A stretch of 64,000 nt of DNA from Lepidodermella squamata (taxonomy: Eukaryota > Animalia > Gastrotricha), in the NCBI GenBank assembly GCA_047495785.1, contig JBLDXI010000034.1, positions 1,054,001 to 1,118,000 of the forward strand, written 5' to 3'. A model generated the notes under the pieces. The model did not search any database. It was not told the origin of the DNA and was given only the letters and a program-made list of their open reading frames with translations. A program made the translations under genes and the position numbers. This document shows positions 2,691 to 61,259 of the stretch, in pieces (within the stretch, counting starts at the first letter, position 1; every line of letters begins with the position of its first letter).

Positions 2691-4764
2691 AGCTGAAAAC
2701 GTGAAAAATCATGTAAACCAATAAAATGAGGAAAAAAATCCCCGCGAACTATACATATGTTCTTATTTTAATTTCCTGTAAACGGGCGGGTTCTTTTTCA
2801 AGGGCGAAAAAGACCTGTGTTCGCCGAATTTTCAGTGTGAAAACGTGCTCATGAATTTGAATTATTTGCGCACAAAATCAATGATTTTTCCGTTGAGTTT
2901 CCGTCCGAGATCTTACCTGCAATCAAGTGAGCTGCGAGATCTGCAAATTAATTTGAGAATTAGACATAGTTTTTGAATATATGCCGGGGAACCCCGTACT
3001 GTCGCCGTTCGTGTCGTGGAAATCTTTGTGCCGGGGGAACCCCCGTACTGTCGCCGTTCGTGTCGTGGACATCTTTGTTTCTTTGTTTGTTTGTTTGTAT
3101 GCGCACATGTGCAATGCCTACGTACACGCCTAATGACTACAAGCCTACGTACACGCCTACGTAACGCAATGTGCAAACCATGACTACCCGCCTACATCAC
3201 TCCACAGCCAAAAAAGAAGTCATTCCAACCACTAGCCACTGGAACCTTAAATTGCCGGGTAAACCTTTGCGCACGGACGGAAAATAATTGATTCTTGCTT
3301 CGCGATTTTCGCGAGTTTCGCGAGTTTCGCGAGTTCACACTTCACCCAGCGCTCACTTCATACAAGAACATCATACAAGCCCACGTGATACGAACTAAAC
3401 CGTAAACCGTAGCCAAAGTTCATGCCGTCGTGAATGTTCGAATTTCGAATAGTTTAAGCAATGTAGTGGTGCAGGACAGCTCGTTCAGAACCCATGTGTT
3501 TTACCGCAGCTTTTCTTGCCGCTTGCCGAATTTTTACGAAGTATTACGAACGTTTGCCGTGAAAGCCTCGTAAAACTGCAGTAAAATTTGCATTACATAC
3601 GTGCGGGGCAGTAGCTCGTTCGAAACCGTGTACTTCGATGCTCCGGAGTCAACGATTTCCACTTTCGTTGCTCTGAGGTAACCATGGCGTCGCTAGGAGA
3701 CGTGTCTGCATTAGACTTGGTCCCAATCAATGAGGCTTTAACAGAAACAGCTAAAACAGAGGAACGATAATCTGGAAGTCGTTCGTGTTGCGACGTAAGG
3801 GACCGCCTGTACTAGCGCATATTTCTATATATCATTATACCGCTACATTGCGGTTGTTTACAACTGCGGAGCGGTTGCATCCCAAATTACTATCTTTGGT
3901 TCGAGGGCTATAAAATTGGCATTAGCTGCGATTGCTATCGTGCGTTCTTGGACTCTTGGAGAGAAAAGAGAAATTCAGCTTTTTCGCCTATCATTCCTAT
4001 AATTCTTCAAATTTTTCTCGCTTTCTTCTGGAATTCTTCGATTGCAGATTTAACAGGTAGCAAAAACGAGCTGCCGTGACCAATGAAAAACTATTATTAT
4101 CCGTGACTCGGTGCCGTAAATCTTTATTTTCAATGCAGCGAAATAATTGAAAATGAACAAAGGAAATGAAACTAAGAGAACAATTCATCACACTTTGTTT
4201 AACAGAAATGGCGATAACGGGTTGAATATATCGAAAGATCCAGCACTCTGCAATAGTATAGTAGCGACCTTATGCCGGAATTTTCCTTTTCCAATATTCG
4301 ATATCCAATCTTTATCCAATCAGCTATAACTCAAGTGTCGAATTCGAGTAAAAGTTGAAGTATAATAATCCTAATCAACAATGCAGAATTTGAAATTTAA
4401 CACAGCAGCTAATAGGATGTACTTTACTACTTTAATAGCAGCGGGAGATAATGAAATAAGATTTTAATGAATTATTATTACGTATTTTAGAAACGAGCCA
4501 TTCAAATTAAAAGTTCCTCTGATTTCTACGAAAATGTATAGAATGATATTCATGCACATGTAATATTATTGAAAGTAGATCTCGCCCCTGGAAGTTTTGG
4601 CGGATAAATCTTTGAATTAGGAAACAAGAGGTCTTCAAAGTTTTCTGAAAATGTATCACTTAAAACCGAAATGAACTAACAATTTTCGTTGACGGCGAAA
4701 CTCCATTGGTTAACTAATTAACTAAGTAACGATAACTAAATTGATAAGCCCCAGAAATGGCTTA

Positions 4765-7307: not shown

Positions 7308-8756
7308 TATAAAATTGATAGAATTATCCTAGACTACGCTCGAAGGGAACGAAGGTGAAATCAAGAAGAGGAGGATAAATTTGGTTGATCTTAAGAATTT
7401 AGCCATGATAACGGAGAAATTGTCTGAAGCGTTTGTGCGTAGTACGCATTCTGCATTCTGGTAGCGTTGCAACCGTTCGGTATCGGATGCGCCGCAATAA
7501 TGATGCTATTACCGGCAAATAAAAAGTAGCTTATATTACCAGTACCAAGTATTTTATTACAAACAGCATGGAAGTACTGCCTAACGCGGTCTCTTACGTC
7601 GCAACACGAACGAAGTCGAGGGCCGTAAATCTTAGCGACATCTATTTCTCGCCGCATTCTCAAATCAAATACGTCCTTGATGATGAAATGCCCCTGGAAC
7701 TCAACGACATTTTGTGATACGCACAAATTTTGTGATACGACGAACGAATTCGGTCCAAGAGGGCCCTGTGTGGAGAAAAACGAAAGTGTATCGTTGACTC
7801 TGGAGCATTCAAGCACACGGTTTCTGAACGACCTGCCCCGCTCAACTTCATTGCCTACGATCTCAACGAGCGTGATGCGGCGACTTTTGCTCTATTTCAC
7901 CATATCGTTCGTGGCGCGGAAGAACCAGCACTTTAGGCAAAAAAACTCGTGTACACAAGAGTACAGTATATTTATTCTGTACAAACTGGTACAGTTTTGA
8001 TGGCCGTAAATGTCAGTACAGCTCATTCGACTGTAGATTGAGTACAGTTGACCAGGCTGTATATTAGATGTACAGCGTTTCATTCCTGTATCATGGCGTA
8101 CAGCTCAATGAGCTGTACGCCCAAGTACAGTCGAATGCAACGTACATGCTGAGTACAGGAGTGACAGCCGTAATGACTGTGTACGGTTCGTCTAAACCGT
8201 ACACGAGAGTACAGGAGATTCATTTTTATAACGTAGTCGATGGAAGTTACGGCCCGCAAACCCACTCACAATTAGATTGACGATTTTGGTGAAAGAGTGA
8301 GAATCGGACGAATGTGCAGGTAATTAATTATTCGACGCGACGATTGCGACGCGACGATAGACGCGACGATAGACGCGACTTCCATGTTTCGTTGCTCACA
8401 TAAGAAACTTGACAAATGATTTCAACCTCTACTCCACCTTCTCAGACAAATGAAAATTGGGCGTTGAGCAATAACGATTATAAGTAAGTTGTTTCCTTTT
8501 CAAACTCCTGTGAATAAAAAGTAGGACCGAAGTCACTTGTCACGTCTAATATTCGATAAATAAGTCATCGTTTTTGATGGTAATAAAGCGCATTTTTAGC
8601 AGAAAGAGCAACTCGTGTCAAAATAAGGAATATAATCACACTTCATATTTCCTTCATGGTGACGATATATCCTATTTTTTCTTCACAGCCCGTTGCCGAT
8701 ATTACCATTGCAAACGATTGTTCACATTTTTCGTGATTTTAGGTAAATTTTCTGAA

Positions 8757-10171
8757 ATGACTGACTCAATAGTAAAAGTGACTATCGGCGAGTCAAAGTG
8801 GGCACGTTGCGTTAGAATGAATAGTTCCGCGGAGAACCCTTTAGTATTTTTAAAAACGAAAATCTACCCCGTCTTCCGCAACATCTTTAAAGCTGACGAC
8901 TATGGCCTTTTTTGGCATGATGGTGATCATTTCGTCATCATTGATGACGATGATGACCTCCTGCTAGCGTTTCACTTGAATCCAGAGCGCCTTCATATAT
9001 CAGTCTTTTTTGGACGCTATCTCGAGGACCTAATGACGCTACAGCCATCTTTGTCGCAAAAGGTCGAGGACTTGACGAGAATGATTTCAGGTATTTGTGA
9101 ATATTTTTATCGAATATATCCTAGGTGGAAGTTCCTCTGATTTTCAAATTTTATGCTCAAAAGGAGAAAGTTTTCAGGACAGATCTTCCTAGTTTAGGTT
9201 AAATGTAAGCTGAATTGCTGGAAAAATCGCAAATTTATCCCAGTTTTTCGCAGCGCTAGGGTTCAGATTGTTTATGCATATTTCTTTAATTAAATGTCTC
9301 TAATTTTGCATAAGAATTACAAACCGAACCTAAGCCGTCGCCGGCCCAGACGCCTTTCAATGCGCCACCTCTGAGTTTAGGTGCGTCACAGTCTCACCTA
9401 CCCATTGTCACCGGTACCAGTGGCTCCAGAGCGGCACCGCAGACAGTTGTTGATCGGACTGGGTCACTTTACGACAAAGTCAAGGAAGTCCCGCTCCTAA
9501 AGGCGGTTGCTAGGACAATGGATGAGCGCCGGGACCTTGGGGAGCCAGGCTACGTCAGGTCAACAACTGAGCACTTCCACCAAATACTCAAGGAGATGGG
9601 TACTTGCTTCGAAGAGTCCTTTGGGGGACGTACCGTCACTAATGTGATGAGCAAAATGAACCAATACAGGGTAAGGCAGTCCTAGTCTTGCTGAAGGCGT
9701 GGTTGCGAGTTTTTGTGAGGTTTTAAAATGGAATGAGGTGGAAATTACTTTAAATCTTCTTTTATATAACCAATTTCTTAGAGGTTTTAAAATATCGAGA
9801 TGGCCGCCATGGAACTTGATGAAACTACTGCTGAGTCTGAGTTGCGCCTAACGCGAAGCGAATGGCTTGAGTTGGAAAAATCTAAGAAAAAAACATCTAG
9901 AAGCTTGAGAGTCAAAGGCCAACGACGAGTTATGGGTAAATTTGTTGGGAAAAAACCTCATCGAATCGGTTTTCGCCGAAAGTGCCGCTTGTGCGATAAA
10001 ACATTTTTCGATTCATCCGGTTTGAAAAAACATTTACAATTGTATTGCAAAAAAACAGGCAGCTTAGCTCTTACTGAGAAGGAAATTGAAGAATTGATTT
10101 ATTGGTCAAAAAAAAATTATTTTGTCAAACAAAATGAGGCACCCAAGAGGCGATCTAGTATGAAAAATTAG
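8757..10171 (+). CDS. transposon cargo gene: PB1-like domain, linker, Myb/SANT-like segment, C2H2-like finger (exons 8757-~9090, 9315-9670, 9782-10171; in-frame TAA at the third codon of exon 3)
   Basis: MTDSIVKVTIG...LFWHDGDHFVIIDDDDDLLLAF matches the PB1 basic Lys plus acidic OPCA-type motif. Exon 2 is fully open in the spliced frame and ends GRTVTNVMSKMNQYR. Exon 3 has CRLCDKTFFDSSGLKKHLQLYC. Confidence 0.6.
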
Positions 10172-10248
10172 CCGATGAGAACTAAAAATGATGCATATTG
10201 AACTTGATTATTGTTTATCTTTAGGACTTTATTTTGTCTACCTTAATA

Positions 10249-12460
10249 ATGTCGAGCAATTCTCATTCTGATGTTAGCGCGACTTGCTCGTCGTGCTTGG
10301 GCTCTGCTGTTGGCAATGTATTGAGCAGAATGCTGGACAACCTCTCAGTTGTTTCCGCAACGTCAACGCCTTCTCAAATGTCGAATATTTCAGAAATTTC
10401 GAATGCTGACTATTTGCCTTCATTCATTTGGCCGAAAACTGAAGAAAGTGACGCGACCCTAGACTCTTCCTCCGATATAGCTAGAAACTTGAAACCCGGT
10501 GAGCCAGATCGAAACGTCCTGTTTCCACCGCTTCGGCCATTTTTATTTTATCATTGCAAGTGCCCAAATCGTTGTAAAGACTATTTTCCTCAGCAAAATG
10601 TCCGCCGGCTATATGACGCTTTTCAAAACAGCAATTTAGATGACCGGCGCAGCTTCATAATTCGCCAAGTAATACCTCGACGTGGTCCTTCGAAACACCA
10701 CACTTTTCAATTCGATGGCGCGTTTTCGAACAAGGCTTCGGCCGGCAACATTCGCGTGTGTTCGAAGTTTTTCCACAGCGCCCTTGGCCTTTCCCCGCGC
10801 AACTTCGTCGAGTGGACTTTAAAGAATAAAATTGGCGATCTAGGTTTCGCCAAGCCGGATGAACGAGGTTGTCAGCCCAATCCTAACGCAATCTCAAACG
10901 AACAGTTTGATCACTGCTGCAGGTATTTCCTTCCGGTCGATTTATGAAAACATTTATTTGCAAATTATTACAGATTCATTGATAGCTATGAGCGTGCACC
11001 CGGTCATTATGTCCGAAAAAATTCCAGAAAAGTTTATATCCAAGGAGACATAACGCAGCGAGAAATGTTCGATGCATATTTGAGGCACTTTTCAACTCTC
11101 TCAGCGGGCCTATACCCACTTGGCTTCTCTTCCTTCAAACGGGTTTTACGCGAAGCCTACCCCGAACTGTCTTTGAAATTAACCAAGAAAGACAAGTGTT
11201 GCAAATGCAGAAAATTTAGATTGCGGCTACGCGAAAACAGAGTTGACGAGAGGCGCAAATCTATCTTCCAGGTGCATTTATACATGAAGAACGCTGCTAG
11301 GCGAGCTTGCAAGGCCGATACGAAAATGGCCCAAGAGAAATCGGAGGTTGTCGTGATACAGCTAGACTATGAAAAAGCATTGTTAAGCCCGGCTATTTCC
11401 GATGCAAACTATCACTACAGGAAAATGAAAACTTGGAATTGCGGTATTTTTGCGATGTTTATATATATTTTAAATATATATTATATCTGTTGCAGTGATT
11501 TATGAAATGGTGTCTAAGAATGCGTTTTGCTTCATGTCCGATGACATTGACCTTGAACACCCTGACGGTAGCTCCGCTGGATCTGCGTTATATGCCTATA
11601 TAACCAAGTATTTACCGGTTCACCATCCGAACTGCCGTACGCTGATCATATATAGTGACAACGGCACAGGGAACCACAGCAGCTACTTCGCAAACGCCAT
11701 CATGTTCGCATTGGAAAACACAACGTCACAGCTCCAATCGGTCCATCACAAATTTTTCCAAGCTAATCATACAATGATGGTCGTTGACCATTGTCATTCG
11801 TAATTTATGAATAGAAAATTGGCCGTTTTTCAACTTTTCAATTTTGTCAGATTGATTGAGCGAAGAGGCAGCCGGCATTCCATCAATTTCCCTACAGACT
11901 GGCGAGAAGTCGCCCGAATTTGTCGCCCTGAACAACCATTTTTCATTCACGATTTGTCTTGGGATGAGCTCCTGGATTTCCACGGCGAGCCAAGCTTCAC
12001 ATCAAAGCTTCGGAAGCCAAAAAACTGGAGAATGAGCAACAACCTCAACTGTGACCTTTTCGGGATTGGAACCAAGCCTAGCACAAAAAGCGATTATTTA
12101 CCATGGTCGGAAGGCGTTTGGTTCAGATATCGAAAGGGGACGAAAGCTGTCTTTGTTCGAGACGGCTACGAAGCGAAATGGCCTTGGAAGATGTACAGTC
12201 TATCGAAAAATTCGCTCAAAAAAGTACCAGTAGGAATTCCCCCGAAACTGAGAAAGTCCCCTCTTCCACTCCCTTACCCTTTGATGGCTGACATGCTTGA
12301 GATGCTGAAGAACGAAATTATACCGAGGTCATATACCGAGAAGATTCTTGATCTTCCTTATCAGCCGTGGAATGGCAAACAATCCGACAAGCGTGCAATA
12401 TTTGAGAGCTTCAATGTTAGAAAAAATTCAGTGCCTTATGATTCAGATTTTGATGATTGA
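10249..12460 (+). CDS. Sola1-type DDD transposase, ~685 aa (exons 10249-10922, 10974-11443, 11496-11799, 11851-12460)
   Basis: Three GT-AG introns of 51, 52 and 51 bp join four ORF-track fragments in frame. Motifs GHYVRK, KKDKCCKC, QLDYEKALLSP, YRKMKTWN, IYSDNGTGN and HKFFQANHTMMVVDHCHSLIER. Confidence 0.85.
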
Positions 12461-12964
12461 ATAAAAGATACCTAATTTCTATATTTGTATGATATAACAT
12501 GAGTAGGAATCTATATTTGAGTGAAGCACGAAATATAGATCGAGTAAAGCGAATGAAACGAGTGAAATCGAGGCGGAGCGAGCCGGTAGGCGAGCGGAGA
12601 CGAGATTTCACGAGGTGAATTAGTCGAACCTAATCACTAATCAGTCAATCAAATTACGTAATAGATAAAACCGCCGAATAACCACTATACTTTGCGTTCA
12701 CTTGCTGACGAAATATCGCGAAAAATGGGAATTTAAATTTGAGTAAACATTTGGATCGAAAATAATTGGTGGCATCCGCTAAGCTATAAGTCTAAGGTCT
12801 TCGCATCTGCAACTGCAGGGATCTGAAGCTGAACTGAAGGGATCTGAAGCTGAAAACTGCTATCCCGATCAAGATAAATAAACTTTACCAAAGAATACGG
12901 CACAGACCATATACCGTACTTGAAGTGCGACATCGTCTTCTGTATTTCGCATGTACACTATCTT

Positions 12965-13090
12965 CTCTCCTGTACCTGAAGTACAGTATCTCTCCTGTAC
13001 TTGAAGTACAGTATCTCTCCTGTACTTGAAGTACAGTATCTCTCCTGTACTTGAAGTACAGTATCTCTCCTGTACTATTAGTACAGTATT
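12965..13090. repeat. 25-bp tandem repeat (~5 copies) with palindromic core, in the Sola right subterminal region
   Basis: Unit CTGTACTTGAAGTACAGTATCTCTC with no spacers. Confidence 0.9.
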
Positions 13091-13663
13091 TGAGCCGTAT
13101 GCATGAGTACTGCCCGATCACTACAGTACTAAGCAGTACGGTCAGGCGTGCCGTACCGGGGTGTACAGCTAATTTCAGCTGTACAGCGAGTACAGCGCGC
13201 CGACTGTACTTTATTTTACAGTCGGTTTGAGCAGTACTGCTGTTTTACAGAGCCATGGACTGTACATTTCGGTACTGCTGAACAAAAAAAATAAGCAAAG
13301 TGCTGGTTCTTCCGCGACACGAACGATATATTGCCGGCTATTACCGAGCTTTTCCCGTGCTCTCATATAAAAACCAAATCTGCCGTGATTTTAATTTGTC
13401 GCGATTTCACGAGTTTGCTAAAACAATATTACTAGGTGATCGGAAGCAGCCGTCTGGTATGACAATAGGGCGTGAAACAAGTCTCTAAAAACATATCCGC
13501 TGTTGGTTTGAAATTATGCAAGTTTCGGACTTCCACGCATCAAGTGCGTCGACGAAGTCTCATTTTTGGACCCGGAACCGAAATACGGACCCTTCTCCTC
13601 TCGGCGACGGAACCATAGTTGTCGGCTCGTCAAGCTGCTTGTCGACTACAACCTACTGATAAT

Positions 13664-17657: not shown

Positions 17658-18509
17658 ATCACCTGCGATCATTTGATAAACTTTTTATTCCACTTTTTAT
17701 TTCAAATCAATAAAACGAATTTGACTATTCTTTAATTGGTACTAATTTACGGAACCAGAAACTTCCCAGCTTCTTCTCTCTTCTTTTTTGGGACTTTCTT
17801 GAAATTTCTGCAATTGAACCGTGACAGTTGACCGTGAATGACATGTGAGCTTTTAATAAGTTATCCGCTTCGTTTGAGAGCAGTTTTTGTTATTGAAACT
17901 CACTTCCCGCACTCGCAATTGCATAATTCAAACTTAACAACCGCCTAGTTATCGATTCAAAGCTTGGTTTTGATTATGAAACTGTCGAGTTGGAACTAAT
18001 TTTATCAGCTGTTTCCAGCCTTAACTTGTGGCTTATGTTGTAATGCTCTTAAATCACAGACTTCTAGACAATTTCTTACGCCGACAGTTAATCAAACGAA
18101 ACCTTGCCATTCAATTAGTAAGTGACCCTTTTTATTCGTCGATGAAAAGCGTTTGAAGTCTGACAGACTACTCGGCCGTCAGGGGCCGAAAATAGTAATT
18201 TAAACCAGAGACAATGTCAATCATCCTCAACGTGGTCGACTCTTTCAATTCGTGCTGATGCGTGGAGTAATTCCGGCAACTTGCAGCATGACATGGCAAA
18301 TATCAAGACTCTCCAACCCAAACGCACACTTTATTCACTTGTAAATGAAGAAAATGGGAGAGGGAAAGTAAGACTGATTATAACAATAAAACTACAGGTT
18401 GAGAAGAGCTCAAACCAATGATCAATTAGAATTTGAAAGGTTGTCATAGTTAAACCGCTGGAACATCATATTTCATCCAAGTTGTATGAACATGGCGTGC
18501 AACCAGGCT

Positions 18510-21500
18510 TTAGGCGACAATGTTGAATGATCCGATGACGAAATCAAAGTCTAAATCCTTGTGGCGGAGCAGATAAATGTGAACAAACAAGAATACAAAA
18601 ATGCCAAATAAGAAAACGTAGAAATCAATAACACGAATCAAACCAATCCTCCCATTTAAGAACTTTCTCTGACGTCTGATTGAGGCGTTTGGATCATAGT
18701 AAGATGCAGCAATCCACAAAATCACCAGGCTGTAAATAGTCGCAGTGATGCAAAACCAAGTCAAACCTTGAACTAGCTTGCTGAGGAGAGTGTCGTAAGG
18801 CTTTTTCGGAACTTCATTCAAAATCGCACTCTGCATGACAGTCATTGTTAGAAGAACCGTGACAGAAAATGCTGCACGATCTGGTACATCTGGCGGCATC
18901 ATCAATAAGAACAAATTGAGAGAGGCGAGGGTTGATGATGGTATGGCGAAATTTTTTACGTAATACCACGGATTCCTCCGCAGCACAGCCGTAAATTTGA
19001 ATGTTGAAACGTAAAAGCCCTTGTAGAAGACTTGACCTGTCGAATTATTGGTCGAGACTAAGGTCCAGCTGTCGCCGGAATGCGAATGCTCGAACATGAA
19101 TAGTAAGGACTTTTCGTTTACACGCACAACGTTGACGTCGCGCTCAAGTGAAAATTCAAAACTGCAATTCTGGGTGTCGAATGGAAACAGATGAAGGGAT
19201 AGCTCGCAGCTAGCCTCGAATAGGCCTTCTTTTTGCCAATAAAATTCGAACGTCCGATTAATTGTTGGCACCTTCGATGACATCATCATCAAATAATCGT
19301 CATTGATGATCATGTCCCGCATTTGGAGGTTTGAGTTGGCTGCTGATAGAAAGCGGATCTTCGGTAGCCACAAATTACTGAGATTGTCAATGTGAATGGT
19401 CTCGAAGTTTCTGCCGGTTGGGAGGGCGGGCGAAGAGAACCAGGGGCATGTATTCACTCGCCAATAAAGAACCATCAGAGCTTTCACGGTTATGATTTCG
19501 TTAACTGTGTCTATTTCATTCAAACCCGTTACTTGAAAGCCAATCTTCACCTTGAGGGGAGCATCGTAATTGCGTGAATTTTCGAAATTGCGTGGTGCGT
19601 AGACTGAAGCGTTGAAATGACTACATTTCCGCTGAATAGGCGTCATATTATCGATGTAGTCGAATTGCGGGGTTTCGAAGATTGGTATCAATTTTTCGGC
19701 AATGGAGTTGCCACTTGAGTAGGTTGTATTCTCAGAGACTAATCGTCGGCCACATGCATTGCCCAAGTTGAACACTTCTTGCTTGCCTAAAGTAACGTTG
19801 TAGAAATAGAAACAAGCAAATTGTGTGTCTTCCGATCGAGGAAGTGGACGAATTCCGTCTCCGAAGCCAATGCCTATGTTCATCGAAAGTTTTTCTATGA
19901 AAACGTCACTTGGCGTCTCTCTGATGAATAAGCAGCGATCTGAAACATGATGATTACATGATAATTTATGCGAAATTGTGTTCAGATATTTCACCATCTC
20001 TTTTTAGCATTAACTTATATAGACGTGAATAAAGCTTACTATGATTAGTGATTAGCGCCAGTGCGCGAAGTGGGTTCCCTGAACTTGAGGTATTTCCGGC
20101 CAAAATTTATGAGCAAAGGGTTTTTTGGGATTTACACCTTATTTTCGTGGATTGAAGAAATTATTCAATTTCCCCCGGTACGCAATGATTTGCGCCTTCT
20201 TCATCGTCGTATTTCGCCTGTGTGGTAATAATTTAATTTAATTAGCTCACCTGATGATTGAAGTTCCAATTCTTCGTTGTCCGAAAGTGTGTGCAGCGAG
20301 CAGCTTCTTGCAAGGGCGTTATTATAAGTGATTGCAAAAAACTTCCAGGTTTTAAGTCGATCATCATTATCATATTGCACCCAAATCGATTTGTCTTCCC
20401 CATAGGCGAAATCTTTCATTGTTAACCCGGTATCTGCTATGGGGGCGAAAACGACACGCGGCTTGTTGGCACTCATATGACAGAAAACCGTGAGTAAAAC
20501 AAGAATAGTAATTAAGTCCTTGCCACTTTCACATGCTGCTATTTTGATGTAGAATGCGAACGTGAAGGCAGTGCGCGGCCGTGGCAGGCCGTCGTAAGCA
20601 ACCACACCACCAAATTTATTGATGTTACCATCCAGGGTCCTATTCAACGCAATGCTACCCTGCGCATAGGGTCCTCCGAATTGAATCCGCTTCGCGTTGT
20701 AAGAGCTGGGTTGGCGAGGCACGATGACTTCACCAGTCCCGTCCCAGCCGAACAGATTCGAATCGAAAGAAAGCGGCCAAAATCCGATGAGATTCTCCCG
20801 GCGTGGGATCTCCGTCATGTCTATTCCTTCGATTTTGCCTATCATTGCTTTAGCTGCGTTCCGGCACGGTGTGAGAAACAACGCCTTCACCTCAACCTCA
20901 GTTAAGGCAGCTCTGTAAAACGAAACACAGGATACTCGATATTCTTGAAAACCATATTCCCTTCCTCCAATTAGGAATTCTCCTATTGTCTCGTTCATGT
21001 TTATTTGTTCTTCCATTGTGAAATCTTTGCGTGACAGCTTGTGATCTGTAGTATTTATTTCATAGAAAACCAAATTTCTCGTCGAGTCGTCGTAAGTGAC
21101 AGCTGTCATGCGGCTATCGACGCCGTCCCTATTGCACGTGTGACCCGGTTGCCGCGTATACGAATCTGTTTTTAAACGAATGGTAGTTACTATCGCGCAG
21201 TACAGCGTGAATAAGTATCCGAAGCGAATCGAGCCGAATGGGCCGTCAGCGTGCACAGAAACCGTGAACGAACTCGTGAATGAACCTGATATTGAATAGC
21301 TCGCGATTCTCTCCGCTTTCGTCGATGAGTAGTAACCAGTATTTACCGCATTGTTCATGCTGAACTCAACTGAACTACCTAATGTTAGCGGCTGAAGCTC
21401 TCTGCTTTCTCCCGTGTATCCAGTAAGGCCGGAGTACGCGTCCAAAGGCCAGAAGGCGACCAGTTTGTCCAAGCGGGGCAGTTCGACACGGGTGACATCA

Positions 21501-21556
21501 AAGCCGGTAGCGCATGCAAAAATGGAGCTGGCGAAGAAAATCGCGTTGTGTTTCAT
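18510..21556 (-). CDS. LamG/pentraxin-like x2 + Cys-loop ligand-gated ion channel, copy 2, complete, 911 aa (exons 21556-20251, 19939-18510)
   Basis: Signal peptide. Donor CAG|GTGAGC at 20250 and acceptor TTTCAG| at 19940 are both phase 1. WLPKI motif, C-x13-C loop with FPFD, M1 YYVKNFAIP, M2 PDRAAFSVTVLLTMTV, M3, short loop, M4. Confidence 0.9.
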
Positions 21557-21823
21557 GGAGCTGCAATCGCGAAAATCAGTAAAACCAACAAAATGACGAG
21601 AAAAACCTGCTCACGAACTGTGAGATGTATTTTAATTTCCTGTGAAGCTCGAACCCTAACGCGAGGGTTGATTTCCAAGAGCAAAAAAGACCTGTGTTTG
21701 GCGAATTTCGTGTGTGCAATTATTTTCTTATATTGCCATTTTTATCGCAAAAATCAATGATTTCTCCGTTGAGTTTCCGTACGAGATCTGCAAATTGGAA
21801 ATGAATTCGAGAATTGTAAAATT

Positions 21824-22139
21824 TGGTCCCCCACAAAGCAGCACGAAGCACTAAACAGTCCCTCCAGCAGGCGCTCAGGCTTAGCCTCTGATTTTCAATT
21901 AATGGACTAACCAAAAGTTAGTAAAATGAGTCATGAAAACTCTGCAATGTAGCTCAGACCTCAATTTGGGCCAAAAATTGTTTTTTGAAAATTTATAAGC
22001 CGGGTTCTTAAAGTTACTATGAGCCCATATTCAGCAAATTTCGCAGCTTTTGTCTTAATTAATTCGATTTACTGTTGCGTGGCGTGAGCACCGCTATTTG
22101 GGTTTATCCGCTTTGAAGCCTTCTGCTATGTGGGGACTC
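21824..22139. mobile_element. MITE
   Basis: Inverted ends GTCCCC(C)ACAAAGCAG / CTGCTATGTGGGGAC. Absent from the duplicate at about 14080. Confidence 0.65.
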
Positions 22140-22642: not shown

Positions 22643-25216
22643 CTAACTGAGCAATTTTTCGATTGCGCTGTACCCGTAAGCCGAGGCAATTTGCAGTGCA
22701 GTCATGCCAGATTCATTCTCAATTCCCTTATCGGCCATTTTCGACAGGAGTAAATTAACGATCCTGAGATTTCCTGATCTCACCGCAGCCATTAAGGGCG
22801 TATTGCCCCCCTCATCACGTGCATTCACATCCGCGCCATTTTCAGCTAGAGCCATAGTTAATAGGTAATTTTCGTTATTAACAGCATTCATTAACGGCGT
22901 GAGACCTGCTAAACCGATTGTGTTCGCATCAGCTCCCATTCCAATGAGGAATAAAGCGATTTCTGTCTTGTTCCAATAGGTCGCTCGGAAAAGGGCTGTG
23001 TTGTTGTTGTTATCCATCGCATCGATATTCGCGCTCCTATTCACGAGGAATCGAATCGTTTCCAACTGACCGTTATTCGCCGCGTAAAACAGCGGCGTAT
23101 CCCCGCTTTGATCTCTTGCCTCCAACTTCGCCCCAGCTGATAAAAGAACCCTCGCTAATTCGATGTGTCCAAACCAAGCTGCGTACATCAGCGGGGTTAT
23201 TGATTTCAAATCTTCCACGTCATCGACAGTTGCGTTTCTCTGAATGAGCCACCTTGCGATTTCAGCCCTAGATTCCGTGCTGTTTGGACACCTTGCAACA
23301 TGGTGAAGCAACGTTGCATTCAAGGCCGAGTAACATGTGCTATCAAGAGGTAAATTCCCAACGGAGATTTGGTTGGCATTAAGACCTTCTTTCGCGTTCA
23401 TTTCAATTGTCCCTATGAGTTGGCGAAAATTCTTCGAATCGCCGCGGCCGGCAGAGATTGCAAGTCGTTTGTACGCCTGGGAAATTCGTCCTTTTCGCAG
23501 GATTTCCACAATTTCCGGAAATTTTGCGTCGACTGCAAACCACTCTGCCGTAGCTCCAGATTTTCGCTCGACCGCGTCGATATCCGCCAAATTTTCAATC
23601 AAAATATTGACGATTTCTGTGTTCCGTCTTGCTACAGCGACCATTAGAGGGGTTAAGCCGTTTGAGTGCCTTAAATTAGGATCAGCCCCATTTTGTAACA
23701 GGGCAGTAGCTAAATCTTTAGTCCCGAGATACGCAGAGTTGATCAAAGCACTTTGGCCATCAATTTCCTGCTGGTTAACATTCGCGCCTCGTCTGATGAG
23801 CGTCATTGCTGATTCTGAGTAGCCTGAGAGGTAGGATGCTTTATTCAAAGCACTTTGCCCTAGTACATCGACGGTATTGATATCGGCGTTTTTGTCCAAC
23901 AGATGACCTGTGATCCAGGCGAAGTCGTGCCAGGCCGCGAACATGAGAGCTGTTTCGTTTTTGTAGTTCCTAGCATTAACGTCAGCTACGGATTCATTGC
24001 GGGATTCCGTCAGCTTAAATATCAGGTGGCGCAGACCAGTTCGTGCTGCGAACATAAGCGGCGTCATTCCATAGGCGTAATCTCGCAAGTTTACGTCCGC
24101 CTTTCTAGCCAGCATTAGTTCAGTAATATCTAAGCGGTCTTTTTCAATGTCGGAACATCGTGCGACGTGGTGTAGGCAGGTGCCTTTCTCGGCACGGTAG
24201 CACCCAGCTCGGGGAGGGTGGTCGTAGGTGACTGCCCAGTCTGGGTCGAATGAGTTATTGGTTTCGCGATCAATGTTTGCGATGATTTGACGCACCATGG
24301 CAATATCGCCTTTGGTACACGCCTCGCCAAGTTTATTGTGCCACTCAATTACAACATTGGAAAACTGTAGAAAAAAAGCGGAAAATTTACAAAAAATAAG
24401 AATTATTAAACCAACCGATGTAAAATTTCTCCTTCCAGCAGAATCAGCCAATTTTGCCTTGTGAACGGACGCCATTGGATTTGAGAAATTCGTCGAAATA
24501 TTAGACCGATCTCCCATTAGCTTAATCAGTCTCAGGGAAGCATTTGCAAGATCCTGTAGTGCTTCGATAGTTAAATTGCCTCTGACTGTTTGATTTTCAG
24601 GGCTGATTCTAAGGGCTCTTATCGACGTCATGCTGTAATATCTCGGCATTCTAGTCGCGTTTTTCCCGAGCCCAGATTTTATGGTCGAAGCTCTGTTAGT
24701 AACAGTTCTTTTCCATGGTTTAGTCGTAGTGGACGGCGTCACTTTCGTAACTTGCTTTTCGAGATAATTAACCAACTCGAAATGCCGAAATGTTGTCGCA
24801 AGCGTCTGAGCTGTAAACCCGAAAGCATCGTCGGTTGAGTTGACATGGATTCCTCGTTTCGTAAGCAGTTTAGCAATGTCAAGCCTCGAAGTACTGTTAT
24901 TCGGGCAGCGGGCTGTATGCACTAGGCAAGTCGCATTACCAACGGGGTGGCATGACTTTGGTGCTCGAGCGGTTCCTTTTCTGTTTGCGTCAAATGCTGG
25001 TGGCGCAGTTCGGTCGATTTTTAAAATCAGCGATCGAACCTGCTCGGCATCTCCGATTGCACATGCTTCAAAAAGAGCTGGGTAAAGCTCTTCTTCAGCC
25101 TGGGAAATATTAAAATTAATCGTGAAGAAATAGTTTTGGAAAAATCAGACTTGCGGTTTTACTAACGCGTGAGTAAATTTGAGTAAAACGAGAGAATAAA
25201 CAAAATTTAATAACAT
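22643..25216 (-). CDS. signal-peptide-bearing ankyrin-repeat protein, ~823 aa (exons 25216-25151, 25099-24416, 24364-22643)
   Basis: Exon 1 MLLNFVYSLVLLKFTHALVKPQ, two 51-bp introns, many G.TPLM.AA..G / GAD.N ankyrin repeats, numerous N-x-S/T sequons. Confidence 0.82.
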
Positions 25217-27236: not shown

Positions 27237-28703
27237 ATAACAGATACAGAGTCTGCCATACAATTGGTCGTCGATCAAAATAGAAAACAATTAACCGCTT
27301 TACTAGAAAAGGGAACGGTAGAAGTAAACGGATTTCCCCTATTGCGACCTTTAATTGTCGCAGCTGGAGTTGGCGACAGTGAAATCTTGCTTCAACTGCT
27401 TCGTCATGGTGCCGATCCGAACTTGAGAGACATTGCGGAAAATTCACCATTAACATCGGCTATTGATGCCGGCCATTTAGATATGGTAAAGCTTTTGCTG
27501 GATAACGGTGCCTGGATTAACAACAAGTGGAAGCCTGCTCTTCATACAGCTGTTGCCAAAGGTAATATCGAAGCTATTGACCTACTCATACAGTACGGCG
27601 CCGACATCCATATCAGAAATGAGAACGGCGAGAATTCGGTCCACGTTTTTGCACTCCGTTTTGGTGCAAATTACATCCGCCCCTTTGACTACGGACGAAC
27701 TGATATGCAGGTGAATTATAAGAGTTTTTCAGCTTTCTTCCAAAATGCCGGTTATGATATCCTCAAAGCACTGAAAAAGCGAAATGTTGACTTTAATGCT
27801 GAATGTAAATACGGGTTTACACCTTTAATGATCGCCTGCAAACGATGTGATCTGGAAATTGCTAGCTTCTTGATTGAATTCGGAGCCGATGTAAATCATG
27901 TATCAAAGTCTGTAAAGAGGACGCCGATTCTAGCCGCGATAACTCATAAACCATTACTCAAGTTATTGTTTGAAAAAGGAGCTGGCCAAACTCTGGAGAC
28001 CCGCAATTCAGAAAATATGACACCGCTGATGGCTACAGCTTATCTGGGAACTGACGGCTTAGACAAGTTCGAAATTTTCAAAATTCTTATCGATCACGGG
28101 GCTGAAGTAAATGTGAAATTCGACAATGGCGATTCGTTGTTTTGCTATCTACTAACGCATATGTTGTTCAAAGAGGCTTCATTGATAGTCGATCGAACTT
28201 CAGACCCGAATGAAGTTCAAACTTCGACTGGAATGACTCTACTGATGTTAGCTGCAAAGTATGCGGTAGGCAATGTGAATTTGATCGAGTCTCTTCTCGA
28301 ACGAGGCGCTAAGATCAATGCGCAGAATACAATTAACGGCAAAACTGCACTCATTTACGCGTTGGAAGCAATAATTTCCGATAACAATGAAATACATGAA
28401 CTTTCATTTATTTTCAAACAATTTGGAGCAAAGGACCGAAGGATGCGCGAGAAAAAGTATCGTAAAATAATCTCAGCTCTACTGGTTCGTGGTGCTAATC
28501 GCCTGCTGCGAGACAAAAATGGGCTAAACGCTAACGACTATGGTTTGCGTACTCGATGGCCATTATTTAACTGCTGTTGTAGTCGCTTATTTACGGTATT
28601 TCCTGTAATAGCTTGCGGAAGGGGCATTGTAATTTCGAAGCTTTTAAGAAGGGGGCGTAATTTAGGAGTAATTCATTATACTAGATTAATAATGGGTGGC
28701 TGA
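27237..28703 (+). CDS. ankyrin-repeat protein (5' end unresolved; begins at acceptor TTTCAG 27236)
   Basis: Multiple ankyrin repeats (SPLTSAIDAGHLDMVKLLLDNGA, GFTPLMIACKR, GKTALIYA). No in-frame ATG upstream of the first repeat. Confidence 0.78.
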   Translation: MTDTESAIQLVVDQNRKQLTALLEKGTVEVNGFPLLRPLIVAAGVGDSEILLQLLRHGADPNLRDIAENSPLTSAIDAGHLDMVKLLLDNGAWINNKWKPALHTAVAKGNIEAIDLLIQYGADIHIRNENGENSVHVFALRFGANYIRPFDYGRTDMQVNYKSFSAFFQNAGYDILKALKKRNVDFNAECKYGFTPLMIACKRCDLEIASFLIEFGADVNHVSKSVKRTPILAAITHKPLLKLLFEKGAGQTLETRNSENMTPLMATAYLGTDGLDKFEIFKILIDHGAEVNVKFDNGDSLFCYLLTHMLFKEASLIVDRTSDPNEVQTSTGMTLLMLAAKYAVGNVNLIESLLERGAKINAQNTINGKTALIYALEAIISDNNEIHELSFIFKQFGAKDRRMREKKYRKIISALLVRGANRLLRDKNGLNANDYGLRTRWPLFNCCCSRLFTVFPVIACGRGIVISKLLRRGRNLGVIHYTRLIMGG

Positions 28704-30305: not shown

Positions 30306-31512
30306 ATGATTGATAACCACAGCAACTATTCGCTAGCCGTTATCGTCAACAGTGGATGGTTGTTAGCCAACTTAACCGAGCAAGGCTACGGTCGTGCTAA
30401 GGAGTATTTCGTTGGCTATAGCCACGATTTAACATCTATGAGCATGGCAGACCGATTAGGATTTCCAATTGTCTCCGGCTTATTGACATTGGCCCTGATA
30501 CCAACCTGCATCTTCAATTTGATCACCCTTGTCCGACGTGGGGTTAAACGGGATTTCCTAATGCTTGCCATATTTCTCCATATTCGAAGCATCCTATTCG
30601 CCATTGTCGCAACACTGCTCTTCACCGCTCCTGTTAGAACTGGAGGCTGGGACTGGCCTGAATGGACTTGTGGTACTTTCTTTGTCTTAGCGTGGGTCAC
30701 AGGAGTTTACGGAACCAACATAGAATCTCTTATATCATACGAGCGAAGGATATGTCTAACTTCAAAATCGATCAATTATCGAACAAATACGGTTAAGATT
30801 CTGGCCATAGCTCTGGCGCAACTCATTTCATGTACCTTGATGAGTCTCGCCTTTCTGATATGGCCATTCGGAACGATGAGGGTGAGAAAGTTTATTGTTG
30901 AGGGCTTCAACAACAATCAACCTGTTGCTCTCTGTTCGTGTTGGGATTTCAACTTCATCAACGATTTCGACACCTCATTTCTAATGATTCTCTACTACGC
31001 TTTGAACTACAATTTCGCTGTTTCATTTCTTGGTTACAACTATTGGATAGCATTTAAAAGCATTTCAAACCAAAATGATGTAGGAAGGAGTACTAATTTC
31101 ACTGGGTCATTGCAATCCTCATTGCCTTCGCGCAAAAACACTCTCTTCATGGAAAGACAGCGGCGAGAGATTTACCTGATGAAGTTGTCAGTTCTAATGT
31201 TCTTAGTTTTTGTAATTACCTTTCTGCCGGCTTTCTGGTCAACGTAAGCGACTGAACGTTTTTCATTTTTAAATTCAAATACTTCTTCATATTAGGCTTG
31301 CGGTTGCTACATGGCGGCTCGGTTCGTACCACATCGAAGTTGCATGGGTTCGGAAGTTTTCACTATGTTTTGTAATATTTGGCTCACTTGTATCGGCGAT
31401 TCTGCAATCCATATCGCCTGATTATCTCGAATCATGGTTTGATAGGTTTGGAAAATGGTGGACGCAAATTCGCGGCAAATCTTCTCGTGTAGATATTCTG
31501 CCTGATAAGTAG
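30306..31512 (+). CDS. orphan rhodopsin-like (class A) GPCR, copy A (exons 30306-31243, 31296-31512)
   Basis: Seven hydrophobic segments, W..PEWTC in ECL1/TM3, ISYERR (DRY-like), TM6 FVITFLP, 52-bp intron. Confidence 0.82.
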
Positions 31513-45058: not shown

Positions 45059-46258
45059 ATGAATAATCCTCCACAAAACTACCCCGTTGCTGTGATCATC
45101 AACAGCGGATGGTTGTTAGCCAATTTTACCGAGCAAGGCTACGGCCATGCAAAAGAGTATTACGTAGGCTATGCCCATGATCTGACTTCAAAAAGCATGG
45201 CAGACCGACTAGGGTTCCCAATCGCATCTGGCCTGTTAACTCTTGCCCTGATACCAACCTGCATCTTCAATTTGATGACATTATATCGACGCAAAGTGAA
45301 ACGTGATTTTCTAATGCTTGCAACCTTCCTCCATATTCGAAGCATCCTATTCGCCGTCAATACAACACTGATATTCATCGCCCCCGTTCAAAATGGAGGC
45401 TGGGACTCACCTGAATGGACCTGTGGCTTAAGCTTCGTCTTAGCTTGGCTAACAGGAATATACGGAGGCCACATTGAATCTTTGATATCCTATGAACGTC
45501 GGCTATGTTTGTCCTCAAAATCGATTAATTACAGAACTAATAGAGCGAAAATCATAGCTGTAGCTCTGGCTCAGCTGATTTCATGTATTCTGATGAGCTT
45601 AGCACTACAGATATGGCCCATCAATACCGTGAGTGTTAGAAAACTTATAGTTGAAGGTTTCAACAGCAATCAACCAACAGCTATATGTTCCTCCTGGGAT
45701 TTCAACTTCATCAACGATTTTGACACATCATTTCTAATGTGTCTCTACTACACTTTGAATTACAGTTTTTCGAGCTCATTCCTCGGCTACAATTACTGGC
45801 TAGCTTTTAAAAGCATTTCCACGTTTCGAACTAGAACCGCTACGAATAATACAACGTCGAGAGATGCTTCGCCTCAGACCGCAATCTTTCGAGATGGGAA
45901 GCGCCGTGAAATTTACTTGATGAAGCTATCTATTCTCTTGTTTGTAGTTTATATAATCACCTTCCTGCCGGCCTTCTGGTCTACGTAAGCTGAATTTTTG
46001 GTCTAATTTAATGACAATTTATTGATATTTCAATCAAGGTTTGCGGCAGCTACCTGGAGACTCGGATCGTATAAAATTGAGATGACATGGGTTCGGAAAT
46101 TGGCATTTTGCTTTATCATTTCTGGCTCACTTCTATCAGCAATCTTGCAGTCGTTATCGCCGGATTACCTTGAAGCTTGGTTTAATACATTTGGAAAATG
46201 GTGGAATAACAAGCGAGGCACAACATCTAGGATAAATGTTTTGCCCGCAGTTGCTTGA
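45059..46258 (+). CDS. orphan rhodopsin-like GPCR, copy B (exons 45059-45984, 46039-46258)
   Basis: Paralog of 30306-31512 with the same intron position (54 bp). Confidence 0.82.
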
Positions 46259-48139: not shown

Positions 48140-50637
48140 ATGCCCTCGAGTTTTAAAATTTTCGTATGGATCCGAATCGTGCTTCAGACTGTGGCACATT
48201 GCCAGCTTGCTATGAAGCCATTCACTCTCAAAGTGCCTATGATAGCCCCTTTGGGAGGGAAAATACAACCAATGGGACCGCTATGCACGGAATCGATGGA
48301 GATAGCACTGAATGCTGTGAATTCGAACAAAGCAATTCTGCCCAACTACAACTTAGTTTTGGATGTTAGCGATGACGAGTGCCTCGATTCAGTGGGCCTG
48401 AAAAAAGCTATGGGAATCTTCAACAATAAGGAATTCGTCAGTACCCTGAACCAATCTCTTGGGCTGAGAATTCCAGCTGTATCCAACGCAAACGAAGGTG
48501 CGTACTCGATTCCATTATTTCTAGGAGGAATCTGCTCCTCGGCTTGCAAAGCTACGGCAAAATTCGCCCATCACTTCGGTTACATCGATGTTTCTGGGGC
48601 TTGTACTGACAACAGTTTGGACGATCGGAGAATTTATCTTAACTTCTACCGATTCGCCCCGTCTGGCAGCGAACTCTCACAAACACGTCTCGATCTTATT
48701 CGGTTCTTCAACTGGACAAAACTCGCAATCCTATCTGATGTTTTTCAATTCCAGTACACGGTGAGTCAAATTTTCCACATTTTGTCGCATCATAGAAACA
48801 GCAATCTTAAATAGGACTCAATTTACTTTCTAAACATTGCACAACGAGGCGGAGTTGAGGTATCAAAGGAGGAATTTTTCAGCTCGGATCCCAGTGAATC
48901 TATAGGCAGGCTCAAAGCAGCTGATATCAGGATTATTTTTGCCAGTTGCTACGTCGATTCATGCCCTGTTATTGCTTGCTCAGTAAGTTTATTCCTGCGT
49001 TATATTTTGACCATTCCAACTTTTCTCATTAGGCTTATTCAAAAGGTCTATACGGCCCTAGAATCGTATGGATTTTCAACAGCCAGGTGGATTTACTATC
49101 ACCTGGTCTTTCCCGCCCTCAAGGTTGCACTAAAGCTATGACCGATGAGTTTGCGGAGCAGTCCATCTTCATAGGTGGTGATTACTCAGGAATTTCGCTA
49201 TCAGCAGATACGAGAAGTGACTCAGGCGTCACGTTTTCTCAATTTAATGAGATCCTAAGCTTGAAGGCTCCTAATGGCAGTTCATCTCCAGCTTACGGAT
49301 GGCGGCTAATTTGCCACGATATGGCTCACGCAGCTGCTCGGATTCTTCACGATACAGAACTGGCTTTGAACGCAGTTAATGAAACGATTAGAAACTTCAT
49401 CTCCGATTCAGATAAGCGAAGTAGTTTAGTTGAATTGGTAAGACGGGCTACAACTGGCCAGAATTCAACCGGGCTTTATGGAAGAATGGGCTTCCTTCCT
49501 GGAACTCTCATTTCCCACAGCCCTCAGATCGTAGTCGAGCAAATACAAGGTAGCTCGAGGAGATTAACGCTGAAGAGACGGGCTAGTGGCAGTTTTGAAT
49601 ATATCGGAAGCTTCCACTGGGTGAATCCAGATGACTCAATACCTAAGACTGGCCCACTATTTCTTAGGGTAGAAGTATCACTCGCGAGGGACTCGTTTGT
49701 TGTTGGTCACTGTTTGGTCAGTTTTTCAGCTCTATCACTCATCTTCTTCGAGCTGTTGTCATTGAAAATGGAGAAGGAAAATATACGGAATAGACTGACG
49801 GAGATTATCCAAGCAGTGTCATGCGGCCTAATCGCAACGTTTCCGCTATGTTACCCAGCTCAGTTCGATAATTCATACTTTGATTCTTACTGTCGGTTTC
49901 TTTCCTTCTCAATTCCAACCAGTTTTGGACTATTGATCTCTTCTCTGGCCCTCAAAATTGCTTTGACTTTGGGTTATCGTCAATCGAAAGTTCTAGCTAG
50001 CCTAGCCGTTTGGAATTGCATTTCAGTGGGTGTTTCGTTGGCTGGGGCGCTGAACGGGTCTATTCTTAGGTCGGAGGTTAAGGAATCGCAGTTCTACAAG
50101 GAAGAGATAGACACAGTCATGAGCAATATCTTTCAATTATGCGGCATTGCATCTAATGACTCATTGTTTCTTGCCGAGATCAGCCTTTTAGCAGCTTTAG
50201 TTTTCACTGCGTGTCTGCTTGGATTTCTAGTCCTACGCCATTCTAAAAGGCTGAAATTGTCTCAACCTAAGAATCCCAAATCGAAAGTCTTGCCATCGGA
50301 GTCTTTGTCTAGGTTGGACACAGCAAACCGCGATCCTCCAATCAGCCAAGAATTGGATCTTAGAAGTGCGCTGAATGTACTTGTGGTCATTTCGGTAACT
50401 GCTGTAATGATGTTCGCGAGTTCACTCCTCGTTGGCAGAACTTCATCTTCGTTATACATCATACTTTCAGCTAATGCTATTGCAGTAATAGTTTGCCATA
50501 TTGTGACACAGAGGAGAGGCACAGTGAAGCAGCTATGCCAGCCATGGCTCAAATACATTTGTTGCAGGCAAATTAGGGAAATACGCCCAAATACCGCATC
50601 TAATCGACCGACATCAGTCGAGCTTGGATCCTGCTAA
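48140..50637 (+). CDS. class C GPCR, GABA-B receptor-like (exons 48140-48760, 48815-48982, 49033-50637)
   Basis: Signal peptide. Venus-flytrap motifs ALNAVNSNKAILPNYNL..DDEC, GGICSS, LDDRRIYLNFYR, FFNWTKLA and GLYGPRIVWI. Divergent 7TM. Introns are 54 and 50 bp. Confidence 0.82.
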
Positions 50638-59447: not shown

Positions 59448-59657
59448 CTTGTGCTCTCACGCGGCACACGCCTCATTTGTGTTGCGTAATCGCTGCTGCA
59501 GGTGGTGTGTTCCTGTGACGCTTGGTGGTGAGCGCTCGCTGTACTCGTTTCGATTCGTAAATCTAGGCCGACTCCGTTCAGATATAAACACTTTACTCAA
59601 GTTATAGCATGCAAAAATAATGTGGAGACATCCACTTTGCGCTTGTTAGTCCTAAAT

Positions 59658-60205
59658 GATCATTTTCAGGCCCGCCTACGTTACCGCTCTGCGTGCGCTC
59701 TTATTGGCCAGCTCACTCTGTACTTAAATCAAGCTCTGAATTTCAAATCGGCTTTTTACAAAAATCAAGTGAGTTGAATTCTCTATTGATTTTTTTACTT
59801 TTCATGCGTTCAAATGTTTATGATGAAACATTTTACGTGCATGATTTTTACGCGGAGACGCGCTCGCGTGAGATCAGACGTCAAACGCCGTAATTTTTCA
59901 GTGCGCCTAAAACCTTTCCACATTTACTTTTTTGAGCGGGAGCCATATATTCAGTCGATAAAGCATTAATTTGCAAACCGGCACAAGTAACTGTCTTACA
60001 CATTTTATACCGGCTGATACAGATTTGTCCGTTAAAAAATGTTTCATAAATCTGAAAAAATAAAACTAAAGTGCGCTATATTTTTCGGTTAATATTGTGA
60101 GCGGGTGTACATATGGCGTGCATGTGTTGCGTAGCCGTGCGTGAAAAGGCAGGCCTGTCAGCGCCCGCGCAGAGCCGCAACGTAGGCGGGACCGAAAATG
60201 TGCTC
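59658..60205. mobile_element. MITE, same family as 31659-32368
   Basis: Same TIR CATTTTCAGGCCCGCCTACGTT; internal sequence in the opposite orientation. Confidence 0.75.
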
Positions 60206-60947: not shown

Positions 60948-61259
60948 TATTTATTTATTTATTTATTTATTTCAAAGCTATGACACCCAGAGAGGGCAGC
61001 TCGACAAAGTTAAGTTTGAAAGGAAACAGATAATTGCAGGACAGTTACAAAAGGATAGGACAATTGGAGATGACATAAATTTGAGTCAACGATAAGTAAA
61101 ACGAAACAATATTACAACAACGGCAGCTCACCGTTTTTTTACCGTGGATAAGGAAATATAAAAATAGAATATATAGAGCTTCATTTTAATTTCAATTTTG
61201 CAGCATTTTTTTCGTAGAAGTGCGAGTAGGTGGCGAGTAGGTGGCGAGTAGGTGGTATT
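60948..61259 (-). mobile_element. retroposon 3' fragment with (TAAA)n tail inserted in the channel exon
   Basis: (TTTA)n followed by AAAGCTAT..ACCCA.AGAGGG.AGCT.GAC, also seen at 33106-33155. Splits codons D-L-V / R-I-D-K. Ends in 11-bp GGCGAGTAGGT repeats. Confidence 0.65.

Follow-up and report, generated by a model that had tools for sequence, protein, structure and literature searches.

Eukaryotic Cys-loop receptors are normally described as beginning with the ligand-binding domain. Accessory domains in front of it have been documented for prokaryotic ion channels of the pentameric ligand-gated class (pLGICs; Tasneem et al. 2005; Hu et al. 2020; PMC9897478; PMC12664993), of which DeCLIC is the sole characterised case, and a paper from 2025 frames such domains as prokaryotic (PMC12664993). 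Among animals, the American lobster genome holds 66 Cys-loop receptor genes with C-type lectin, pentaxin or LDLa domains (Polinski et al. 2021, Sci Adv, PMC8221624). These chimeras, named ‘pentaxin-lectin-LGIC receptors’, are expressed in brain and antennules, and the authors of that work state that no animals other than lobster and related crustaceans have them (PMC8221624); in the literature searched we found no functional follow-up. The survey of Jaiteh et al. 2016 deliberately discarded terminal regions, and Jiao et al. 2019 left out of their analysis a small number of gene models from molluscs and cnidarians ‘with other functional domains’ (dynamin, GAIN; PMC6896357). With this background in mind, we analysed a 64,000-nt stretch of the gastrotrich Lepidodermella squamata (assembly GCA_047495785.1, contig JBLDXI010000034.1, positions 1,054,001 to 1,118,000 of the forward strand; hereafter the window, to which all coordinates refer). 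At 18510–21556 it carries a locus, here called B, that most likely constitutes a single two-exon gene for a Cys-loop channel subunit headed by two tandem domains of predicted lectin fold. Two open reading frames (ORFs) lie there head to tail on the minus strand, 21556–20201 (451 amino acids, aa) and 19997–18510 (495 aa), and splicing them yields an uninterrupted ORF of 911 aa with a TAA stop at 18512–18510, close to the ~910 aa that an earlier note on this DNA had expected.

The downstream half of the product can be assigned with ease, and here the channel identity proposed in that note is borne out by Pfam, PDB-chain and motif evidence. Exon 2 matches the profile PF02931 (Neur_chan_LBD) with an E-value of 1.5e-15 and 57.7 bits against a cutoff of 26, over profile positions 18–215 of 216, and its best matches among solved structures are chains of the nicotinic acetylcholine receptor (nAChR), muscle alpha and alpha7, and of 5-HT3A (E ~1e-14). 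Of PF02932 (Neur_chan_memb), the start is matched at 22 bits, below the cutoff of 28.1, which is probably due to an M3–M4 (intracellular) loop of only ~15 aa. The Cys-loop contains the motif FPFD and aligns to C128–C142 of nAChR alpha1. Furthermore, a HMMER alignment to nAChR alpha1 spans M1–M3, with the pre-M1 Arg, the M1 Pro and M2 aligned, and hydrophobic segments at residues 791–809, 824–850 and 865–896 correspond to M2, M3 and M4. Judged by its sequence, exon 2 thus encodes a genuine Cys-loop subunit. M2 has Leu at 9′ and Asp at −1′, and since the latter is acidic, the pore is probably cation-selective.

We also considered whether the channel is of the agonist-binding nAChR alpha type and rejected this, as neither the aromatic box nor the vicinal Cys pair was found in the alignment to nAChR alpha1. 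Tyr93 is replaced by Leu and Cys192–Cys193 by Gly-Phe, Trp149 and Tyr198 fall opposite gaps, and the equivalent of Tyr190 is the sole one of these residues to be kept; the conserved loop D Trp is retained as well. The residue numbers follow nAChR and were checked by counting along chain 9avu_A. With the loop A Tyr, the loop B Trp and both vicinal Cys lacking an equivalent, acetylcholine is an unlikely agonist, and we class the predicted channel with the orphan receptors rather than the acetylcholine receptors. A word-indexed search with exon 2 retrieved a single other channel, P0002, which is canonical, 466 aa long and 24% identical.

The N-terminal half consists of two homologous domains of ~210–250 aa each. 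When BLAST is used, only the first strand of domain 1 finds its counterpart in domain 2 (E 1e-5), yet profile–profile alignment with hhalign pairs the two over 192 columns with a probability of 97.7% and an E-value of 1.3e-12. The tails of both domains are part of this alignment, with SCVSFYRAALTEVEVKAL at the end of domain 1 facing the exon-2-encoded FACFYFYN..L..QEVFNL, so that both the tandem duplication and the completion of domain 2 by the start of exon 2, which the earlier note had read by eye, stand up to a formal comparison.

As to the fold of these domains, several lines of evidence point in the same direction. The Pfam clan Concanavalin includes LamG/LNS domains, pentraxins, legume and L-type lectins and the lectin-like HcN domain of clostridial neurotoxins. 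An AlphaFold model of domain 1 alone, built from an 11-row alignment of domain copies, shows 13 strands and a C-terminal helix, with a mean predicted local distance difference test score (pLDDT) of 61.3, a predicted template modelling score of 0.68 and pLDDT values below 50 in loop regions. Using this model, Foldseek returned 162 PDB matches at E<=1e-3; the top 50 are all concanavalin A (ConA)-like lectin folds, namely legume lectins, arcelins, lectin-like modules of sialidases and the lectin-like sub-domain of clostridial neurotoxin binding regions. Matches in the AlphaFold database are ConA-like too and add VIP36, the TSPN domain of collagen V and the LamG domain of DEK1. With VIA-align, solved ConA-like members superimpose on the model with Z 12–14 over 165–184 of its 208 residues, the best one with Z 14.0 over 182 residues at a root-mean-square deviation of 3.2 Å, and a shape search of the ESM Atlas gave TM-scores of 0.64–0.73 to Laminin_G_3 clusters. 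Language-model features agree with this: of the 100 nearest ESM Atlas clusters, 79 contain Laminin_G_3 alone and most others Laminin_G_3 plus another ConA-like family, with scores of 0.95–0.96. We thus assign domain 1, with medium confidence, to the ConA-like/LamG-type sandwiches at the level of the predicted fold. The likeness to the ConA-like/Laminin_G_3 superfamily consists in the predicted fold of domain 1 and in language-model features, whereas neither domain has a significant match to a family hidden Markov model, Laminin_G_3 being reached below threshold in 2 of the 11 domain pieces, with 0.026 as the best E-value. The likeness of domain 1 to the clostridial neurotoxin binding domains (HcN) is likewise at fold level only. 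The earlier description as LamG/pentraxin-like therefore holds for its first part; pentraxin as a family was rejected, since PF00354 is unmatched and the signature H-x-C-x-S/T-W-x-S is missing from locus B and from its paralogues A and C in the window (see below).

The only relative of the N-terminal region came from a phmmer search with exon 1 against 1.8 billion representative proteins, which gave one weak match, P0001. This protein of 1036 aa is encoded on a metagenomic eukaryote contig (L001, 7045–10155) and is a single-pass membrane protein made of four tandem FWPLD...FT...W..A.TY...C modules and a C-terminal transmembrane helix, with no channel. The module is thus confined neither to channels nor to the L. 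squamata genome. A word-indexed search with P0001 found nothing beyond P0001 itself, and of 206 pattern matches that a two-domain alignment produced against metagenomes, none was confirmed. The gene neighbours of P0001 include tetraspanin, MORN and CEP76 genes.

The two halves of the protein evolve at clearly different rates. Among the paralogues A, B and C, identity is 54–66% in the N-terminal region and 86–95% in the connector, extracellular and transmembrane domains. For the latter, the ratio of nonsynonymous to synonymous substitution rates (dN/dS) is 0.04–0.15, with 0.04–0.12 in the extracellular Cys-loop domain. In the N-terminal region it reaches 0.56–0.89 between A and B (0.89 in domain 1, 0.56 in the exon-2-encoded tail of domain 2) and 0.28–0.48 in the older pairs B–C and A–C, which indicates real constraint there. 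Within domain 1, predicted loops are less conserved than strands between B and C (42% vs 60% identity, p 0.012); for A–B, the difference is not significant. Gene conversion was considered as an explanation for the conservation of the channel half and was rejected, dS being similar in both halves (A–B 0.25–0.40 vs 0.34–0.74).

How does this architecture relate to the described systems? The lobster chimeras are among its closest counterparts. Like locus B, they are Cys-loop subunits (PF02931 plus PF02932) with extra extracellular recognition-type domains, they form a large lineage-specific family, and their pentaxin domain belongs to the same ConA-like fold superfamily as that predicted for the locus B domains. 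Their domains are, however, recognised by Pfam (CLECT, PF00354, LDLa), whereas those of locus B go undetected and resemble tandem Laminin_G_3-type sandwiches; no CLECT, pentaxin or LDLa domain was detected in locus B. The ESM Atlas also contains an arthropod cluster that combines Neur_chan_LBD with Ldl_recept_a and Lectin_C. Since the N-terminal region of locus B has no arthropod relatives (P0001 being the 1 match among the 1.8 billion representatives) and a kynureninase gene in the window shows no crustacean affinity, an independent origin of the two families appears likely, the present one having arisen in an unrelated eukaryotic lineage that is intron-poor and poorly sampled.

The resemblance to DeCLIC lies in the layout. 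Each DeCLIC subunit has two tandem β-sandwich (‘jelly-roll’) lobes in front of the extracellular domain and a minimal intracellular loop, and the N-terminal domain makes up about half of the subunit mass, all as in the protein predicted for locus B; a short M3–M4 loop is common to the bacterial homologues, as it is here (~15 residues). Yet DeCLIC comes from bacteria, has no Cys-loop disulfide, and its lobes are 8-stranded and bind calcium, whereas locus B represents a eukaryotic gene with signal peptide and intron, encodes a true Cys-loop subunit and has larger predicted ConA-like sandwiches of ~13 strands. DeCLIC is not among the 50 PDB fold matches listed for domain 1, and no head-to-head comparison was made.

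A third group for comparison comprises the cephalopod chemotactile receptors, reportedly the subject of work by van Giesen in 2020 and Allard in 2023. These and the intronless nAChR-like expansions of molluscs (PMC6896357) are, like the locus B family, tandem, intron-poor and lineage-specific and have lost acetylcholine-binding residues, and a role as sensory receptors has been proposed or shown for them. Unlike in locus B, there is no accessory N-terminal domain, and specificity resides in the canonical extracellular domain. The dynamin and GAIN domains in the models of Jiao et al. are not lectin-like and differ from locus B in that respect. As to whether the architecture is undescribed, which the earlier note could not confirm, the lobster genome annotation (PMC8221624) is so far the only source to report a comparable design, so that the general idea is not new, while the type of domain and the lineage are. 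A second, apparently independent family would make lectin-fold heads on pentameric channels a recurrent solution, not a curiosity. What sets the locus B family apart are its ConA-like domains, which are invisible to Pfam, the fast head on a conserved channel and the simple gene structure.

We thus propose, as the reading that we consider fairly probable, that locus B encodes a two-exon, 911-aa subunit of a pentameric Cys-loop channel in which a fast-evolving crown of lectin fold confers specificity for large or surface ligands and gates or tethers an invariant channel. Five subunits would form the pore, probably a cationic one. Since all known pLGICs have their N-terminus at the top of the extracellular domain, the ten lectin-fold domains of the pentamer would sit above that domain. 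As the variation sits in this crown while the transducer stays constant, the crown is the likely specificity-determining part, with glycans, proteins and microbial or conspecific surfaces as candidate ligands, large or surface-bound. It may modulate or trigger gating of the invariant transducer allosterically, or tether the channel to its ligands; modulation of gating is what the N-terminal domain of DeCLIC does. A bolder version, which we regard as rather unlikely, holds that ionotropic pattern-recognition receptors were built independently outside crustaceans, a hypervariable ten-domain ConA-like crown conferring specificity for glycans or surface macromolecules and directly gating a near-invariant, minimal cation channel. 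If direct gating by the crown were true, Cys-loop ligand recognition would have moved from the classical inter-subunit pocket into an accessory domain. With two exons, 911 aa and almost no intracellular domain, locus B would offer a compact system in which to ask if a Cys-loop pore can be gated or tuned by an accessory domain, and if channels of this kind serve animals or protists to detect glycans or surfaces fast.

Several observations weigh against the proposed reading. The N-terminal domains lie below the recognition threshold of Pfam, exon 1 having no match at E<=1, and a profile search of PDB sequences with the N-terminal region found nothing at E<=10. The confidence of the domain 1 model is medium (mean pLDDT 61), and the model of whole exon 1, with both domains, is unusable (pLDDT 43.8). 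The sole public run found with this stretch consists of genomic contigs, intron included, and the support for the splice is comparative. For the A–B dN/dS values of 0.6–0.9 in the N-terminal region, relaxed constraint fits as well as diversifying selection, given three sequences. Finally, C, which is one of three full loci, appears to be damaged.

The main alternative accepts the architecture and assigns the recognition event elsewhere. Extracellular partners of receptors are known, such as the neuronal pentraxins for AMPA receptors and the CUB-domain protein LEV-10 for nematode acetylcholine receptors. The lectin-fold domains could accordingly be a built-in equivalent of these proteins, serving only for anchoring, clustering, assembly or trafficking, while a small soluble agonist acts at the usual inter-subunit pocket. 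We hold this to be rather unlikely. It would agree with the extracellular Cys-loop domain being complete and under strong purifying selection (dN/dS 0.04–0.12), and with the retention of two residues, the equivalent of Tyr190 in loop C and the conserved Trp of loop D. It would also agree with the behaviour of the sole characterised case, since the N-terminal domain of DeCLIC modulates gating and does not cause it (PMC12664993). A pure anchor, however, is not expected to evolve several-fold faster than its channel among tandem paralogues, the aromatic box that nicotinic receptors have on the principal side is largely gone, and no candidate agonist can be named.

Both proposals presuppose that the two ORFs belong to one gene. 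The alternative, which we consider very improbable, is that exon 1 encodes a secreted, lectin-like protein of two domains that ends inside the ‘intron’, and that the downstream ORF is an independent channel gene. The absence of transcript evidence for the junction would suit it, as would an in-frame ATG that precedes the acceptor of locus B by 19 codons. Against it stands, first of all, the conservation of the splice sites. By direct reading, the donor of exon 1 (cag/gtgagc) follows base 20251 and the acceptor of exon 2 (tttcag/) precedes base 19939, both in phase 1. The corresponding joins are 1400/1030 in locus A and 56654/60241 in locus C, again GT..AG, in phase 1 and at the same aligned codon. 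The introns of A, B and C measure 369, 311 and 3586 nt, and those of A and B can be aligned only in patches (~67% over 157 nt). That place and phase of donor and acceptor are common to three paralogues with largely diverged introns argues for a single gene.

Furthermore, exon 2 alone has neither a conserved start nor a signal peptide, which the earlier note had already pointed out. In all three loci its frame meets a stop 4–25 codons 5′ of the acceptor. The upstream ATG occurs in B alone and is missing in A and C, and no signal peptide was found in exon 2, the peptide added by this ATG included. Reading through the donor leads to a stop after 4–16 non-conserved codons, and direct reading finds no AATAAA in the intron of locus B. 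The domain structure is a third argument. Without the first ~62 residues of exon 2, domain 2 is incomplete, so that a stand-alone product of exon 1 would lack its last strands. In P0001, the module runs uninterrupted across the point where the intron of locus B sits. Lastly, the step in dN/dS does not coincide with the exon border but lies inside exon 2, at residue ~498, where domain 2 ends; the final strands of this domain, with which exon 2 opens, evolve at the rate of the N-terminal domains. As such, the three junctions, the phase-1 splice sites and the splitting of domain 2 by the intron, as predicted in the earlier note, have all been confirmed at the level of the genome, and a single two-exon gene remains the most likely structure. 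A furin-type cleavage site between domain 2 and the channel was considered and rejected: B has GRRL at this position, but A and C a single Arg. The segment that connects domain 2 with the ligand-binding domain probably includes the equivalent of the pre-β1 helix.

A tblastn search with the spliced protein of B detected three further copies in the window: A, C and the start of a fourth, D. Locus A is 65% identical to B in exon 1 and 87% in exon 2, and the match of D comprises 76 aa at 53% identity (63769–63996). Both A and D are cut by the ends of the window. In the genomic run, the depth over the ligand-binding domain and the inter-domain linker is raised to ~5–10x baseline by contigs of 90–95% similarity, which points to several more copies of the family elsewhere in the genome. 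Three-frame translation of locus C revealed the deletion of ~44 aa of the ligand-binding domain, an insertion of ~290 bp and a frameshift near the C-terminus, and this copy is probably a pseudogene or misassembled. The insertion, at 60950–61235 (plus strand) in the channel exon, has (TTTA)n at its start and GCGAGTAGGTG in three tandem copies at its end. Borders of the GT..AG type that would restore the frame are present, so that it could be a young, insertion-derived intron rather than a disabling lesion. That locus B, as one copy in a family of recent expansion, is itself decaying and non-functional, its high N-terminal dN/dS reflecting lost constraint, is scarcely credible: the A–B value of 0.89 in domain 1 and the damage in locus C would fit, but the ORFs of B (435 codons in exon 1 and 476 in exon 2) and its splice signals are intact, its channel half shows a dN/dS of 0.07–0.12 at dS 0.3–0.7, which is not expected of a pseudogene, and the 0.28–0.48 of the older pairs B–C and A–C speaks for constraint in the N-terminal region.

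Table 1. Coordinates of locus B, its parts and its paralogues in the window.
Feature	Position	Strand	Details
Locus A, paralogue	1–2690	−	exon 1 2690–1400, intron 1399–1031, exon 2 1030–1; cut by window end
Locus B, exon 1	20251–21556	−	1306 nt = 435 codons + 1 base; start codon, signal peptide, domain 1, linker, most of domain 2
Predicted signal peptide, ~residues 1–18, MKHNAIFFASSIFACATG	21503–21556	−	short polar n-region, then hydrophobic run; by eye
Domain 1, residues 25–232, predicted ConA-like/LamG-type jelly roll	20861–21484	−	AlphaFold model and fold searches
Domain 2, exon-1-encoded part, residues 250–435	20252–20809	−	homologous to domain 1 (hhalign)
Intron inside domain 2	19940–20250	−	311 nt, GT..AG, phase 1; position kept in loci A and C
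Locus B, exon 2	18510–19939	−	1430 nt; opens at phase-1 AG
Domain 2, last strands and helix, exon 2, residues 437–498	19752–19937	−	aligns to end of domain 1 and to the contiguous repeats of P0001
Conserved connecting segment, residues 499–560	19566–19751	−	three N-glycosylation sequons; dN/dS 0.09–0.15
Cys-loop ligand-binding (extracellular) domain, residues 561–757	18975–19565	−	PF02931 match
Cys-loop CELSLHLFPFDTQNC, C680-x13-C694	19164–19208	−	regular expression on the spliced protein; aligns to nAChR Cys-loop
Transmembrane domain M1–M4 and 18-aa C-terminal tail	18513–18974	−	hydrophobic segments and nAChR alpha1 alignment
AATAAA, candidate polyadenylation signal	18330–18335	−	~175 nt past stop codon; direct reading
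Locus C, paralogue	55361–61875	+	exon 1 55361–56654, 3586-nt intron, exon 2 from 60241
Locus D, fourth copy, signal peptide and start of domain 1	63769–64000	+	cut by window end

The remainder of the window holds a number of other features. A high-copy repeat abuts the 5′ flank of locus B at 21752–22000, where the word depth in the genomic run is ~2800–3700 vs ~60–70 over the gene, and the same interval has several contig joints and loose ends. Two long single-exon ORFs with ankyrin repeats adjoin the channel gene, at 22643–24922 (minus strand, 759 aa) and 27264–28703 (plus strand, 479 aa). The kynureninase is encoded by a single-exon ORF of 458 aa at 50833–52209 on the minus strand (KYNU_C plus Aminotran_5). 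Its best matches reach only 41–51% identity and are found both in bacteria (Acidobacteriota, KSB1) and in animals; at 41% identity, the Daphnia enzyme is no closer than vertebrate or bacterial ones. This points either to deep isolation of the lineage or to horizontal acquisition of the gene. Four ORFs of 309–516 aa on the plus strand have no Pfam match (49087–50637, 45059–45988, 30306–31247 and 62007–63050), the last of which sits between loci C and D, and ORFs of 188–237 aa lie within 7906–13325.

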